A stretch of 63,247 nt of DNA, counting the filler, from Reticulomyxa filosa (taxonomy: Eukaryota; Protista; Foraminifera), in the NCBI GenBank assembly GCA_000512085.1. It is 9 parts of 9 records of this genome, joined end to end, with 100 filler letters (N's around TTAATTAATTAA, not from the genome) between each part and the next. Parts side by side here need not be neighbours in the genome. Positions count along the whole stretch, not along the records: positions 45,892 to 51,420 come from ASPP01011372.1; 8 more parts are not named here. One strand, given 5' to 3'. Made by a program: the position numbers and the translations under genes. Under the pieces are notes generated by a model that saw nothing but the letters and a program-made list of their open reading frames with translations, made no database searches and was not told where the DNA came from. Positions 1 to 51,420 of this stretch are shown piece after piece (position 1 is the first letter of the stretch; each line of letters begins with the position of its first letter).

Positions 1-2980
1 CAATAGCAATAACAATAGCAATAACAATAGCAATAACAATAGTAATAAAGAACATATAACAATAGAGAAAGGGGATGATGACATCAATGATACACCGGCG
101 TTGCGTCGCTCCACGGCAATGATAAAACGAAAGGTACATCATTTTGACGATCACAACCGAACAAAAAGTTGGAGTGTGTCGAATTTATCGACGTCACTGC
201 GAAGCATCACTTGTCATGCAAAAACTCGGAATTGGCAAATGAATTGGAATTATTAAATAACATGGACACGGAGGAAATCCGTATCGATTGTGAAAACAAT
301 CCACGATTTCATCCCAATTACTTTCTGAAGGTTATTGCATTTGATTTGGACAAAACCATGGTACGAACCATTTCATTACGTACCAATGAACAACCTCAGC
401 CCGAACAATTCGAAAACGGCTATTTTATGTTTTATGACGACACCACTGTCGAATTTCATCACGTTTACAAACGTCCCTATTTAACCGAGTTGTTGCACTT
501 TTTGCAAGTCGTTGTCAAAGAGCAGTTTCATACAAGATTGATTATGTGCACTCACGGTACTGAAAAATATGCACAGACGATTCTCAAGAAATGTGGAGCT
601 TCGGATTTATTCGAAGTTTACATACACTCTTTGTTACTTTGTCTGTTTTGTTACTTGTTGCCTTTTTTTTCATGTGAATGTAATATCGACAAACAAAGTT
701 CATTATGCCTCGCGAAGATTGGCAGCGTCGACGCTTTGACGACGATTACAAAACACGGCGCTTCAAAACGATTGCAAAGATGGCCCAGCGTTGTAATTGT
801 TCAACAGAAGATGTGTTAATGATTGATGACGATCCAGGTGTGTATGGACGAGCAGATCGCTGTCATGGGTCCTTGTTGCATATCAAGCCCTTTGAAGATC
901 CCGTCATCCAAAAAGACGACAAGGAAATGCATAAGCTGATTCAATGTCTGCATGACATCTTAAAGCATGGCAAAAATTATTATAATCTTTTGTTGTGCAA
1001 CAGTATTGCTTATACTGGTCTGGTCAATGAATATACCGTTGCAGGATCACGTCGACGGAGACAACAAGAGCAGGAACAAAAGAAAACAACTCAGATTAAT
1101 GAGACATTGCAATCACAATTGCAAAGTTTAAATCATTCTGATTATAAAAATCAACTCCCATCGTCCGATTTATCCACAGAAAATTCCCTTATTCTAGGAC
1201 ACAATGAGATCAAAAACAAAGATTCCTTATTGAAAGCTGTTTATTTACGAGATCGTCTTTTTCGTATGTTTTTTTTTTTTTTTTTTGGCCATTTTGAAAT
1301 GTTGATATGTCTGTTTGAATATTTGGGGGCCGAACAACAGTTCATCATTTGCGTTTACGATTGAAAGTGCTATGGTGTCTGCGCAAAGAATTTGCAATTG
1401 AAATAAGTCCAAAGGAATGGCTGGGAACATTGTATCTGTTTGATCGTTTTCACAGTGAAAAAAAAATTGATTGGAAAAAGGCAGAGCTAAATTTCAGCTT
1501 GCATGAGTTTATTATATTAATGTTTGGGTGCTTATTTATTGCTCGCCAATACCTGTTTCCAGACAACAAACGTCCCAAACAATTTCGACGAGATCCATAC
1601 ACCTGCAAGTTGTGGCTGTATCACGTCAAATTGTACCAAGAAATCATCACTCGACTAACAGAGGAACGAATTCATTTCTTAAAGAAGTTGCAATTGCAAT
1701 GGCAACAAATCCAACTCAAGAACCAACGTTCCTATGCTCCCAAATATGTCAATTTGGACGCTGATGTTGATATCGATGACGATGACAACTACAGCAACAA
1801 TAATGACAACGAGGACGACGATGGAAATGACAACCGAGCAAAGAAGCAGCACTGGGATGATCCAAGTAACAATACTTTATTGGATCAATATCAACAAGCA
1901 CTCAAGTCATTGCATTACCCTATCCCTTTGCGACACCAGCAATATGGTCACAATAGTTTAGCTTCTGCTGCTGACTATTCTACATTTTCCATTACTCAGG
2001 CATGTCTGTCTAAATCTTCGGATATTTCTCAGAGTGAATTGATGGACATTCAATCCACTTTACCAATTCCAATTCCTACTAGTAATAATGTTAATGACTA
2101 TTCCAATCACCATATCAGTTATCTGTTTGTTTGTCCATCTGTTTTTATTATAGCCATCGCATACACACATATATAATTGCAAACAAAAAACATAAGATCA
2201 TAACTCAAATTCAACAAAGCAAACATCTGTAATGGATGTTCGCGCCATTGAAAAAGAGGAAGCAGATGACAGTGGCAATCTCACTGCCGGAGAGGAAGAA
2301 GACGAAGACGATATGGATAAAAATGGACAAAAGGGCAATCCTCCTTTGTCGGTCAAAGATGTACCTGAAGACAATGGCATTTTGCCACATGACAAAATCC
2401 ATTCATCAATGCTCATTTGAAACATGAGCAAGAATTACTACAAACTCTACCCAACGACTGTGATTCTTCGTTGTCCATCCACCGCCCATCCCGTTCAAAA
2501 GAAAAACAGGGATTTGCATCTGCCACAGCAACACCAAAAACAGCGACAACAGATACCTCGTCCATGTATAATTATCAACACTTATCCTTTGCAAATGAAT
2601 TACTAATAGATCAAATTAGCAATATCCGCAGTTTTGTGACCGGGGAAATCATACAAACACGTGATCATGCCTACAATGGAGACATGGATAAAGACTACAA
2701 ACAAGAAATGCTCAGTGAAGAATATGGCCATCGACATGGACGTCGTCATAAACTTGATTTCATCAAAAAAGCATATTTCGAAGACCTCAATGAACTTTGC
2801 AAAATCATTCGAGATGGAATTGGATATCCCAAAATATTGCATGGATTATATTGTCGACCAACAGATGGATTTGATTCCACTTTCTTTGCCAAGTATCAAG
2901 AATTTGCTAATCAGATGTTCCTTTGTGTTGAAAAAATGGAAAATTTGGAACAAATTGATATGTTGAAATCGTTGTTCTGA
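1..2980 (+). CDS. FCP1/SCP (NIF)-type HAD phosphatase with C-terminal cyclin-like segment; 5'-partial, multi-exon
   Basis: VIAFDLDKTMV (DxDxT motif I), KRPYLTELL, MCTHGTEKYAQTIL and VLMIDDDP match FCP1/SCP motifs. GT-AG introns 616-698, 1264-1340 and 2118-2196 join ORFs in frame. Frameshifts are needed near A-runs 220-224 and 2394-2397. The Asn/Ser repeat at 1-47 is probably coding. Confidence 0.8.
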
Positions 2981-3426
2981 AAACATTTTTTTTTCCTCAT
3001 CAAAACAGTTTAAGTTTTTTTATTTTGTTTTTACCGCACCTTTTTTGTTTTTGTTTTAGTTTTTGTGAAAGCATTGAAAATTGATCAACATAACAGCATT
3101 TGCTACAGTCAGTTCTTTTGAGAGTTTATCTTAGTTTTGTATCGGTGCGTTGATTTTTTGTGTTGTATTTTTCTTCTCTGGCCCCAGCCTCTGCAAAAGT
3201 CATTTTTTGAAATCCTCTTTGGTGCAATATGTGGAAATAGCTCCACGAAAATATGCTTCAAAAATAACCAACAAATATCACAAAACATTTTCATCATCAA
3301 ACACTCGACAATCAAAAATTGACATTGTTGTCAAATTTCATTAATTTAAAACAATAAACTTTTTTAAAGAGAGTTGACTTATTCAAACTTGTTGAACACT
3401 CATTACTCCGTAGCTTATTTTTAAAA

Positions 3427-45891: not shown

Positions 45892-46249
45892 AAAATTAAC
45901 GGAAGGGTATGAAAAAGTGATGGCGATGGAGCAACAAGAAACATCAAAAAAAAAGTCTATTCGTGTTGAAAGACATTTGGATGTTACGTGCCCACAAAAA
46001 AAAAATTTTGTTTATTATTTTCATCATCAACAATAACTTTTTTATTTTTATTTTATTTTTAATGTGCAAGGTAGAAATAATTTTTTTTTTTTTTTTTTTT
46101 TTATTATTAACTTTACATTTGAAGGCCAATATGATGGGCGCCCCCGTAATTTGTTGTTATTGTTGTGTTGACAAAGCTAAAAACGGCAATAGGAAAAAAA
46201 ATAACAACAAACAACAAACAACAAAAATATAACAATAAAAATAAAAAAA

Positions 46250-49200
46250 GAGTGACAAACCTACATTTACATTGGCTTATGGAACTGCCACTGGCAATGC
46301 CAAGGCGATAGCGCTTGAAATAGCTCAAATTGCATCTAATGGCGATCAACAGTGCCTCGTGCAAGGACCGATGGAACTAAACGCGTTGGCGACGAAAGCA
46401 GCGTTTACTCAATTGCCAGAACGACGTGTGCTTGTGATTGTGTGCTCCACAACCGGAGATGGGGAGGTGCCAGAATGTGCGGCACGTTTCTATCGCAAAT
46501 TGCGAATGAAACTTAGTGAATTTGAAGAAAATGAAAAACAAGAGGACAACGACGATAGAGCCAAATGGCTGGCATATACCCATTACGCCATTTTAGGATT
46601 GGGGGATTCCAACTATTCTCAATTCAACGCTGCAGCTAGAAAACTTGATGACGTCATCATAAAATTAGGTGCAAAGAAATTTTTATTATACTGGAATGGG
46701 TGATGATGGCACTGGGTTTGTTTCTTTTTATTGTTTTTCTTTGTTTGTTCTAAAGCATTGAACCTAATTTTTTTTTTTTAAAACGTTCCCCCCCTTTTTT
46801 TTGTTTTTTTTTTTTTTTTTTGGTGATAAGGCTCGAAGATGTTGTGGAACCGTGGAAACACGGAGTGGTGAAGGAAATCCGACGCATTTGGCCACAAATC
46901 GTAGAGGAATTCATTCGCACATCCCCATCTTTGGTCCCACAATGGAAAAGCCTTCGAAGCTCAATACTCAGCAGTCCCCAAGCGACTAGTTCGCAGCTTC
47001 GTAGTCATGTGTTTGGTGAGGACATTGGCGACGAACTGTCCTCCATTTCGGTTGAAGCGGCCTCGTTCAATCGCACCGACAGTACCTTCGACTTGGCTGC
47101 ATTGGCCGAGAGAAGGCAGGAGGAAAAAACGACAGAGGGAAAGGCAGCGGATCGAAGACAAGCTGCTTACTCATCCGTTGCAGAACCGTTATCGTCACAC
47201 AGACATCAAGCCGACGAGTCCACAGATTCGCTTCACGTTTTAATGAAAGAAGCCAAACAACGAGTCAATGAAAAAATATTGGAGGAATTGCCAACGACGA
47301 CTACAACCACAACCACAACCACAACCACAACCACGACTGCGATTACTTTGAATGACGTAACCGGCAGTGACAAACAAGAAACGAAACAAAATGAGATTCT
47401 TTTGGACTCACAGTCCACCCGAGCTGCTTTTTGGGAAAATGTCAATGTAATCATAATAATCCATTTACACATACATATATATCTTTATGTGTACACATGC
47501 ATATATACATATATATAAATATATGCGCATACATTATAAAAAAGGGCTCACGTCATTCGGATTCAACCATGCTTCCATCGCCTAGTCTCAGTGGCACCAA
47601 ACGATTTCGCATTCACTATTTCGAAGCAGACGAAGCAGACCGCATTCGCAAGTCGGAAGATGCCATCTTTTCGCAGAGATTCCATTGCGTGCAGGATTCA
47701 ATGGGGTCGCCGACAGGCATGGCACGCGATAGCGCAAAAATGAATCTGACACACACACGCGACGAAATCGATTTGAAGAATGGGCGCATTCCCTCGTCTT
47801 CATCGATGAAAAGTCATGTGATATCGTACGACAAAAATGCCCCTTTTTTGGCAACATTTTCCAAAGCCTATTTTTTGACCACATCTCAATCTTCAAAGAA
47901 TGTACTCCATTTGGAATTAAGGCTGCCCAATGGAGTATCGTATCAAACTGGAGACCTGCTGTGTGTGTATGTACCCAATCCGGATGATTTTGTTCATTCG
48001 CTATTGCGCCGTGTGAACATTGACAAATCCTATGTTATTGATGTCAAACCCATCAATGACACATTGACGACGAGGCCTCTGCCCCATATCTATTCTCCTG
48101 CGACTATCGAAAACATTTTCAGATATTGTTTGGAACTGAAAGCAGTTCCTCATAAGACGCTTATCCGGGCGTTATCGTGTTGTTGCTCGAACGTTGACGA
48201 TCAACGGGCATTGGAAGAGTTGGCAGCCTCAAGTTGAGACTATTCATTTTCATTGAACTTTTTTTTAAAAATCGCTCCCCCTTTTTTTTTTTTTAAATTA
48301 TTGGTATTGGGTATTGATCACGCAGAGCGAAGAGTGAAAAATGGCACCATCTTGGACTTATTGGAGCAGTTTCCGAGCTGTGAACCCTCGTTGGAACTTT
48401 TGTTGACACATATCCCGCCCCTGAAACCTCGACAGTATTCAATAACCAGTTGTCCGTATATTCATCCCGAACACGCCCACATCTGCTTTCGAGTGATGCG
48501 ATACAATGACACGCTCGTCTCTTCCAAAATTACAACGGACACGGAATTGGATACGCATATGCTCTCTTCTGCAACCAATGGCAAAGAGAAGCACAAACAT
48601 TTGGATGGCTTGTGTACCACGTGGTTGTTCAATTTATGCAAAGAGAGTGGTATGTTACCCAAAAGCAATCGTATTGGGCTTGGATTAACCTATTGCTCCA
48701 ATCCATCTAATATTCACAATTATAAAGGATTCCTCATGGATGAGTTTTCTCGTCGGCCAAAAATTCCTGTCTATTTCAAGGCTGCCTCGCATTTTACTTT
48801 GCCAAGAGACGATGTTGTGTATAGTAACTTAATTCTTGTTGGACCAGGTATTTACTTATGCCAAAAAAAAAACAAACTTTCTTTCTTCTTTTTCTTTTTC
48901 TTTTTCTTTTTAATTTGATTCGATAATTTACATATGAATTCGAACAATCTTTGCTTGCCTTGATTCACTTACTATAGGCACCGGAGTGGCACCATTTCGT
49001 GGGTTTTTGCAGGAACGAGAGTACTCGTCGCAGGTGATGAAAAAATCACACGGCTCTGCGTTGGCATGCATGGGCGCATGGCGTAACCTTGATATGACGT
49101 TAGAAGACGAAACGGGTATGGAAAACGTGATGGAAAACGAGGATGAAGATAACGAACTTCTTACCAATGGATGGGAAGAAAGCAAATTGACTAACACTGG

Positions 49201-49747
49201 AAAGGTTGTCTTATTCTTTGGCTGTCGCAATCCACAACAAGATTTTTTATATGAATCTGATTGGAGACATTTTCAACAGGTTTTTTTTTTTTTTCTATTT
49301 ATTAAAAGAGGGGGAAAAAAAAAGGGGAGGGGGGAACAGTTCTTTGATGATAATGAGTTTAGTTTGATGACTGTACAGAAAGGAGTGTTGACTGATTTCT
49401 TATGCGCATTTTCGCGATCCGAAAAAAATCGAAAAATTTATGTTCAAGACAAGATTCGAGAAAATGCACAAATGGTGGCGAACTTGATATTGAAGGAACA
49501 TGCCTACGTGTATGTATGTGGAGATGCCTCTGCAATGGCCAAAGACGTGGAAACAGCCATAATCGAGGTGTTGTCATTGCACTCTGACTTAGTAATAAAC
49601 GAAGCAAGAAAATATGTTAATCAAATGCAAACGAGTGGTCGCTACAAAGTGGACATTTGGAGTACTGTGGCTCCTTTTGTGACAAATGGCGAGTCCAGTG
49701 ATGGCAAACAACCTTATGAGAAAGAAAAGTCTCTTTTCTCCTCTTAG
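46250..49747 (+). CDS. MTRR: Methionine synthase reductase (diflavin reductase), multi-exon, probably 5'-partial
   Basis: Flavodoxin motifs YGTATGNAKAIA, STTGDGE, LGLGDSNY; TGMGDDGTG|LEDVVEPW after removing one T at 46680-46684 (MTRR-type); PRQYSI, GLCTTWL, GPGTGVAPFRGF, FFGCR, YVCGDA, DIWS. Confidence 0.85.
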
Positions 49748-50471
49748 CAAATTTTTCCATGCATTTAAGCTGGGCAGAGTGTTGCTCCTACCCAGGAAAG
49801 CACCTCTGTTGCTTGCCGAGTGTTTTGCACGAAAACTGAAATCTTAAAGCGAAGTTATTGAATGTTGGGGAGGGTGTCAAATGATATATCGTTTTTTCTA
49901 GTTCGATAAAAAAATGAATACACTGCAAGTTATTGTTTTTTTTTTTTTTTTTTTTAGGTTGTGATTTAAAAACCAATTTTTTATAAGCTCACTTTGAGAT
50001 AAGCATAGCATACCAAAACTTGTTTTAGTTTTTGTTCCTTGTATTTGTTTCCGCTTTGTCCCAAGGTTCTTGAGAAAAAGTTTGGTGTTGACATTTTTAT
50101 TTTATTATTTTTTCTTTCAAAACTATTACTTCTCACTTCATTTTTTATTGGATCATTTTGGTTAGTATCTCTTGATAACTGGATCAACAATTCCAAACAA
50201 GACTGTTAAACTCAGATTTGTGACATCTCTAAGAGCAAAACAAAGTATCTTCAATGTTTATATAAATTAGTAAAAAAACTCATCAAAAAAAAAAACAAAC
50301 TAATCAATGTTTGATAATATTTTTTTTGCAATATTCATATCGTGAGAAATAGCATGTGCAAATAACTATAATTTCTCTACAAATTTTTTTTCAAAATAAA
50401 AAGTGTGGTTCATGAAAACATAAAAAGGATAAGTAAAAGTATCGATTTATTGACATAGTATCTGCCTCAAG

Positions 50472-50619
50472 ATTATGTGTTGTCAATCCGGAGATGTGCA
50501 TGATTGTGAAAGCGATATGTGCAACGAGATGTTGCTTAAATACTAGGATTGCTTGACGCATAATTGGTGGACGGGAATGCGCTTAACCTATGGTTAAGCG
50601 ATTCTTCGTTCATTTTTTT
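50472..50619 (+). ncRNA. Unidentified structured RNA candidate with T7 terminator-like run
   Basis: Nested stems with G-U pairs, a GAAA tetraloop, a ~20-bp 3' hairpin and T7 at 50613-50619, in a GC-enriched intergenic island with no ORF. Confidence 0.65.
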
Positions 50620-50842
50620 AAAAATATGTTCAAAATTTGAAGAAATATGCTTATGTTTTTCAATCTAAAGAAATTTTTTATATATTCAAATCACAAAATT
50701 ATAACGCTTTGTAAAACAAAATTTTGATTATTTTTGGCTTTTCTTGTTTGTGTTGATCAAATCGTTAAAAAATTAATACTGTTTTTAATATTTACAAAAG
50801 GTTTAGTTAAGCAGACTTAAAAAAAACTCGTAAGGATAAAGA

Positions 50843-51420
50843 ATGTCGCAAGGCTTTGGACATTCCACAAGAGTGATAAAAAACATTTTATTGACTGGAA
50901 GCCCAGGAGTGGGGAAAACAACATGTATTAAGTATATAGTCAAAGCTCTTTTTTCAAAGTACAGTTCAAACGTGTCCGCAAAAGAATGTAAAATCCATGT
51001 AAGTGGATTTTATTCGCAAGAAAAGCGAGACCGAGAACGTAATAATCGAATTGGCTTTGACATTGTATCAGTACCAGACGAAAAAGTTTCAATATTGGCT
51101 CGTTGCGAGCCATATGTGCCGCAAGAATGCCGCGGTAAAAACAATCCAATGGTTAGCAAGTACGTCGTAGACTTAGTTGGCTTCGAGAAGGCAGTGCTGC
51201 CATTATTGGACGCAGCAATCCAACGTTCTCGAGAGCAAAGCAGTTACTCACAAACCAAATGCGAAGAAAAAGGGTAGGATGAGGAGAGGGGATAGACGTG
51301 TTAAGCAAAACTATTGCAAGGTAGTGTCATTAATTGTCATTGAAAAAGCATAAGCGAGCACGTATCATGTGCCCTTTTGTTTTAATCTCAGAACAAAATT
51401 TGTACAATACTAAAAAAAAA
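50843..51420 (+). CDS. NTPCR: NTPase_1 family (NTPCR/THEP1) P-loop NTPase, 3'-truncated
   Basis: ILLTGSPGVGKTT, GFYSQE.R, RIGFDIV, ILAR, VSKYVVDL..FE. The Walker B exon is not reached before the spacer. Confidence 0.88.

Follow-up and report, generated by a model that had tools for sequence, protein, structure and literature searches.

A candidate small RNA gene of snRNA-like layout, perhaps derived from U1, in the foraminiferan Reticulomyxa filosa

The locus described here lies in a window of 63,247 nucleotides, filler included, that joins nine parts of the genome of Reticulomyxa filosa (assembly GCA_000512085.1); all positions count along this window. The part at positions 45,892-51,420 is the entire contig ASPP01011372.1 (5529 bp). 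An intron-containing gene for a diflavin reductase, whose domains are of the flavodoxin, FAD-binding and NAD-binding types, occupies the + strand and ends at 49747, and an ORF of the NTPase_1 family starts at 50843, 3' of a 1.1-kb AT-rich spacer. The structured RNA element is sited in this spacer, which measures 1095 nt from the reductase gene to the NTPase gene; 725 nt separate the reductase stop codon from the element and 224 nt separate the element from the NTPase ATG further downstream, all three being on the same strand. Its parts are collected in the table.

Table. Parts of the RNA element and of its immediate surroundings, in window coordinates
Feature	Position	Strand	Description and basis
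TATA-like A/T block	50420..50427	+	~25-32 nt upstream of the GC-island start; sequence reading
Putative single-stranded 5' tail	50452..50471	+	GC 45%, like the body; contains UAGUAUCUG
Closed 5' domain	50472..50564	+	three-way junction inside outer and inner helices; minimum-energy and centroid folds
Outer helix of the 5' domain	50472-82 with 50554-64	+	minimum-energy fold
Inner helix of the 5' domain	50484-89 with 50546-51	+	minimum-energy fold
Hairpin a	50496..50522	+	~11 bp, one bulged G, GAAA loop; predicted fold
Hairpin b	50521..50535	+	5-bp stem, 5-nt loop; predicted fold
Junction strand	50536..50545	+	mostly unpaired; base-pair probabilities
Sm-site-like linker GCAUAAUUGGUGG	50558..50570	+	between closing helix and terminal hairpin; 12/13 bases identical to the U1 string
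Terminal hairpin	50566..50614	+	~22 bp, perfect 9-bp core, four G-U pairs in the lower stem; z -6.23
T7 run, candidate transcription stop	50613..50619	+	directly 3' of the terminal hairpin

The element stands out from the spacer by composition. A GC island of 161 nt (50452-50612) has a GC content of 0.42 against 0.24 in the flanks, with sharp steps at both edges. Its 5' edge, at a GC step near position 50450, lies 20 nt upstream of the start given by the original prediction, which had placed the element at 50472-50619. Across 50452-70 the predicted unpaired probability is 0.66-0.96, whereas G50471 pairs; since the 20 nt upstream of the previous start are predicted to be unpaired, the 5' end of the RNA is probably a free tail. 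The spacer as a whole carries 21 runs of T and 22 runs of A of at least four, and the longest runs inside the island are two T and three A. T runs are avoided in the island, unlike in the flanks: only 1.3% of island shuffles have runs as short (p ~0.013).

The island is followed by the T7 run, and no T4 or longer run lies within it, a combination of the type expected for Pol III termination that is suggestive rather than specific. Approximately 11% of flank positions have a T5 run within a few bases, which sets the chance level for a terminator-like run, and because T runs are common in the spacer, T7 alone is weak evidence for Pol III. The A/T block upstream of the island may, on a reading of the sequence, be a promoter element, such motifs being common in an AT-rich spacer. 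The original suggestion, that this is a small RNA gene, either divergent or new, and possibly transcribed by Pol III, is partly supported by the GC island, the avoidance of T runs, the T7 run and the lack of an Rfam family. A 21-nt imperfect inverted repeat (50304-50324 with 50620-50640, 81% complementary) brackets the RNA locus and may be a chance product of AT-rich DNA; a target-site duplication was looked for at the locus and none was seen.

The minimum-energy fold of 50472-50619 on the + strand reaches -51.8 kcal/mol (z -5.49), and none of 200 dinucleotide shuffles folds as well. It reproduces all the helices, the tetraloop and the hairpins of the original prediction, whose coordinates, including those of the T7 run, all match the sequence. 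Most of the fold signal comes from the terminal hairpin, which by itself has a z of -6.23, while the domain with the three-way junction gives only a modest value when taken separately (z -2.66; 3 of 200 shuffles do as well). A preference for the + strand had been proposed on the grounds of G-U pairing. It holds for energy: in the fold with the upstream 20 nt added, 13 of the 59 pairs are G-U, which is why the + strand, at -51.8 kcal/mol, is favoured over the - strand at -34.5 kcal/mol. In z-score it does not hold to any great extent, the difference between the strands being small (-5.49 vs -4.60). In a sliding scan of the contig that covered both strands, z drops below -3 in three regions, the locus among them.

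Searches for known families and for relatives were conducted at several levels. Rfam release 15 was run on the whole contig and then, with E values up to 10 admitted, on three sub-stretches of 241, 131 and 83 bases; neither the whole contig nor any of the sub-stretches gave a credible match, and only weak microRNA-type or truncated chance hits were returned. The Rfam scans yielded nothing for the spliceosomal, SRP, 5S, Y, vault, telomerase, snoRNA, ribozyme and riboswitch families, and U1, U11, U2, U4 and U5 were missing even from the 83-base scan, in which matches down to about 9 bits were listed. ARAGORN found no tRNA or tmRNA. A metagenome scan with a pattern joining the stem-loop-1-like and Sm-like blocks yielded nine matches, all of them chance occurrences in unrelated sequence; a scan of prokaryotic genomes gave one chance match, in a Bacteroidia MAG, and a viral scan gave no match to the element. 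For each flanking protein the closest relatives share just 44-47% identity with it, and no similar RNA was found on their contigs. A 56-aa ORF spanning the RNA had no relatives or further copies by exact look-up and similarity search, and a literature search found no description of foraminiferal small nuclear RNAs.

Of the known RNAs, U1 offers the most extensive likeness. The comparison was made by eye against the human U1 sequence printed in PMC8833184, and all blocks other than the Sm probe taken from published U1 were chosen after seeing the sequence, so that the statistics of those motif blocks are optimistic. Three sequence blocks of the element are colinear with human U1, and the parts follow in the same order: a free 5' tail, a closing helix, internal stem-loops, the Sm-site context GCAUAAUU.GUGG and a terminal hairpin. 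The original prediction had pointed to a resemblance to the U1 Sm-site context, and this resemblance is real, as 12 of 13 bases are identical to the published human string and none would be expected in shuffles. In both RNAs GAC.GCAUAAUU.GUGG lies between the closing helix and the terminal hairpin and is followed by the 3' hairpin. The 5' tail aligned by eye with AUACUUACCUGGC matches in 9 of 13 columns, and it starts with AUA and ends with CUG, as at the U1 5' end. Hairpin a bears a string resembling U1 stem-loop 1 by pattern match to published U1, namely GGAGAU..CAUGAU...GAA, with U1 spacing except for one extra base. The part corresponding to the U1-70K-type loop (CAUGAU...GAA) differs in three loop bases, and its bases are predicted to be paired. 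As many alignments are possible, only the Sm-context match is clearly unlikely to have arisen by chance.

The differences from U1 are no less substantial. The sequence that defines U1, the 5' splice-site-binding ACUUACCU, is absent, the element tail reading AUAGUAUCUG; the absence of the U1 ACTTAC had also been recorded in the original prediction, together with that of U5 loop 1, a tRNA cloverleaf, a hammerhead core and a clear telomere template, and on all of these we agree. By duplex energy, the tail pairs no better with the contig's six 5' splice sites than with decoys, 23% of 273 GU decoys being as good, whereas a canonical U1 end separates the same sites better (7.7% of decoys as good), in each case with only six sites. 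The junction is predicted to be three-way, with two hairpins, as opposed to the four-way junction of U1 (stem-loops 1-3 and helix H), and the element has no U1A-type loop. The U1 Sm heptad is AAUUUGU (PMC4756616), and that of the element is AAUUGGU, with only two central U. The Sm-like AAUUGGUGG is located between two stems, one base off the U1 site, and has an unpaired probability of only 0.03-0.32; it is mostly paired in the ensemble, and opening the linker is predicted to cost 5-6 kcal/mol. The U1 covariance model (RF00003) finds no match at E up to 10 in the stretches of 83, 131 and 241 bases. Because ACUUACCU is missing, pairing with splice sites does not exceed that of decoys, the junction is three-way and the heptad is paired, the element was not filed as U1, nor as U2, U5 or U11.

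Other families share less with the element. Nine bases of the tail, UAGUAUCUG, are identical to what we take to be nine bases of the U2 branch-site region, and this 9-mer occurs once against 0.03 expected; however, it is the only part of U2 present, as stem-loop I and the U2/U6 helix I sequence are lacking and the U2 model (RF00004) finds no match. The U1-like Sm context and the overall architecture are presumably common to the element and U11 snRNA, but the element contains nothing complementary to the minor-type 5' splice site and has no Rfam match to U11. A survey covering 263 species detected no snRNA of the minor spliceosome in Rhizaria (PMC11347168). U5 was rejected, as the conserved U-rich loop 1 on a long stem is missing, the loops being GAAA and a loop of 5 nt, and Rfam gives no match; U4 was rejected by eye for want of complementarity to U6. 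Likewise rejected by eye were the H/ACA and C/D snoRNA boxes, a hammerhead core, a telomerase template, 5S rRNA and group II domain V, and tRNA (ARAGORN), 5S rRNA, ribozymes and riboswitches (Rfam) have no family-model match.

The layout of the element appears to be that of an Sm-class snRNA, with U1 as its apparent nearest relative. A functional RNA element of some kind, be it an RNA gene or a cis-acting structure, is likely to be present, and the locus is probably a genuine small RNA gene that belongs to no catalogued family, snRNA-like and perhaps U1-derived. More specifically, and tentatively, we prefer to see in it a very divergent snRNA-like scaffold from the U1 family, encoded by an independently transcribed small RNA gene. 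Beyond the observed fold, composition island, T-run avoidance and motif matches, this would mean that the + strand gives rise to an independently transcribed non-coding RNA of ~160 nt, roughly 50452-50615, with transcription ending within the T7 run. Its layout would be that of a small nuclear RNP RNA, in which ~20 nt of free 5' tail are followed by a closed body of several helices, an Sm-like linker of the U1/U11 type and a terminal hairpin; the body and the linker would bind protein, the free tail would pair with a target RNA, and the scaffold would descend from U1. In diplonemids, variant or alternative U1 genes with altered 5' ends are known (PMC12621601). It is unlikely that the element goes further and is the true U1 of foraminifera, a second or alternative U1 with a three-way junction and a changed 5' splice-site-binding end, or the founder of a new Sm-class snRNP. 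A remodelled foraminiferal U1 would explain why standard models miss the element.

Several of the same features can be read without any relation to splicing. The element may be an orphan Pol III transcript, in the manner of the Y, vault, 7SK and ciliate telomerase RNAs, whose U1-like strings are a coincidence, and we consider this possible but doubtful. Such a transcript would account for a T7 run directly 3' of the terminal hairpin combined with T-run avoidance in the body, for a TATA-like block ~30 nt upstream, for the predicted pairing of the Sm-like heptad and for the lack of a match to any snRNA family. The element also resembles Y RNA, vault RNA and ciliate telomerase RNA in its size, in the long-range helix closing the core, in the terminal hairpin and in its would-be U-run end. 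However, a template repeat, a Ro-binding bulged stem and internal promoter boxes, which would mark these RNAs, were not seen, none of their families is matched, and neither A and B boxes nor a tRNA-like fold is visible. Coincidence must also contend with a U1 Sm context matched in 12 of 13 bases that falls exactly between the closing helix and the terminal hairpin.

It is distinctly unlikely that the locus is not a functional RNA gene and represents a hairpin-rich remnant of intergenic sequence, an snRNA pseudogene in decay or a small mobile element of the non-autonomous kind. One near-perfect palindrome supplies most of the statistical signal, the junction domain being only marginal; both strands are good in z, and the inverted repeat (50304-24 with 50620-40) surrounds the region. 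Yet only one strand allows the 13 G-U pairs, no target-site duplication turned up, and the GC island is sharp-edged and free of homopolymers, features that decaying sequence in the R. filosa genome would lose. The position of the element between its two neighbours and on their strand would also suit a cis-acting structure in a flanking mRNA, either the NTPase 5' leader or the 3' end of the reductase transcript. This we regard as very unlikely, as the T7 run and a very AT-rich spacer separate the element from the NTPase ATG, and no riboswitch or other cis-regulatory family scores meaningfully. Finally, GUAUCU in the tail could be the donor site of a spliced-leader RNA whose short upstream exon is trans-spliced. 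The donor-like GU, the Sm-like site between stems and the poly-T stop, which is in use by protist SL RNA genes, do resemble an SL layout (PMC6053224); nevertheless, judged from the GC island, the exon would comprise just a few bases, and a spliced leader is extremely unlikely.

Foraminifera are characterised by extreme divergence of the core cell machinery. If expressed and conserved, the element would be a spliceosomal RNA that had been missing and is heavily remodelled, or else an RNP RNA specific to the lineage, and either outcome, if true, would offer a way into the study of rhizarian RNA processing. Were it the foraminiferal U1, this would imply that the lineage recognises 5' splice sites in an altered manner. 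If it is not expressed, the locus would be an example of how strong folding, a GC island and resemblance to known motifs can still lead one astray.

Some further observations concern the neighbouring genes. In the public annotation, the single diflavin reductase gene is represented by two gene models (741 and 236 residues) at 46371-48918 and 49037-49747, or 480-3027 and 3146-3856 in contig coordinates, and the NTPase ORF (50843-51277) has no gene call. The flavodoxin exon contains a frame change within a T run at 46672-46716: the ORF stops at 46701-03, and the conserved GMGDDGTG motif lies in the next frame relative to it, which is probably a homopolymer error in the assembly. Within the linker region of the reductase, an ACN repeat at 47300-47340 encodes a run of ~14 threonines, and a TA/TG-rich low-complexity intron at 47448-47545 produces, on either strand, spurious hits to a number of microRNA families. 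In the NTPase coding region, a 150-nt stretch at 50932-51081 has an unusually good + strand fold (z -3.96, 30 shuffles).
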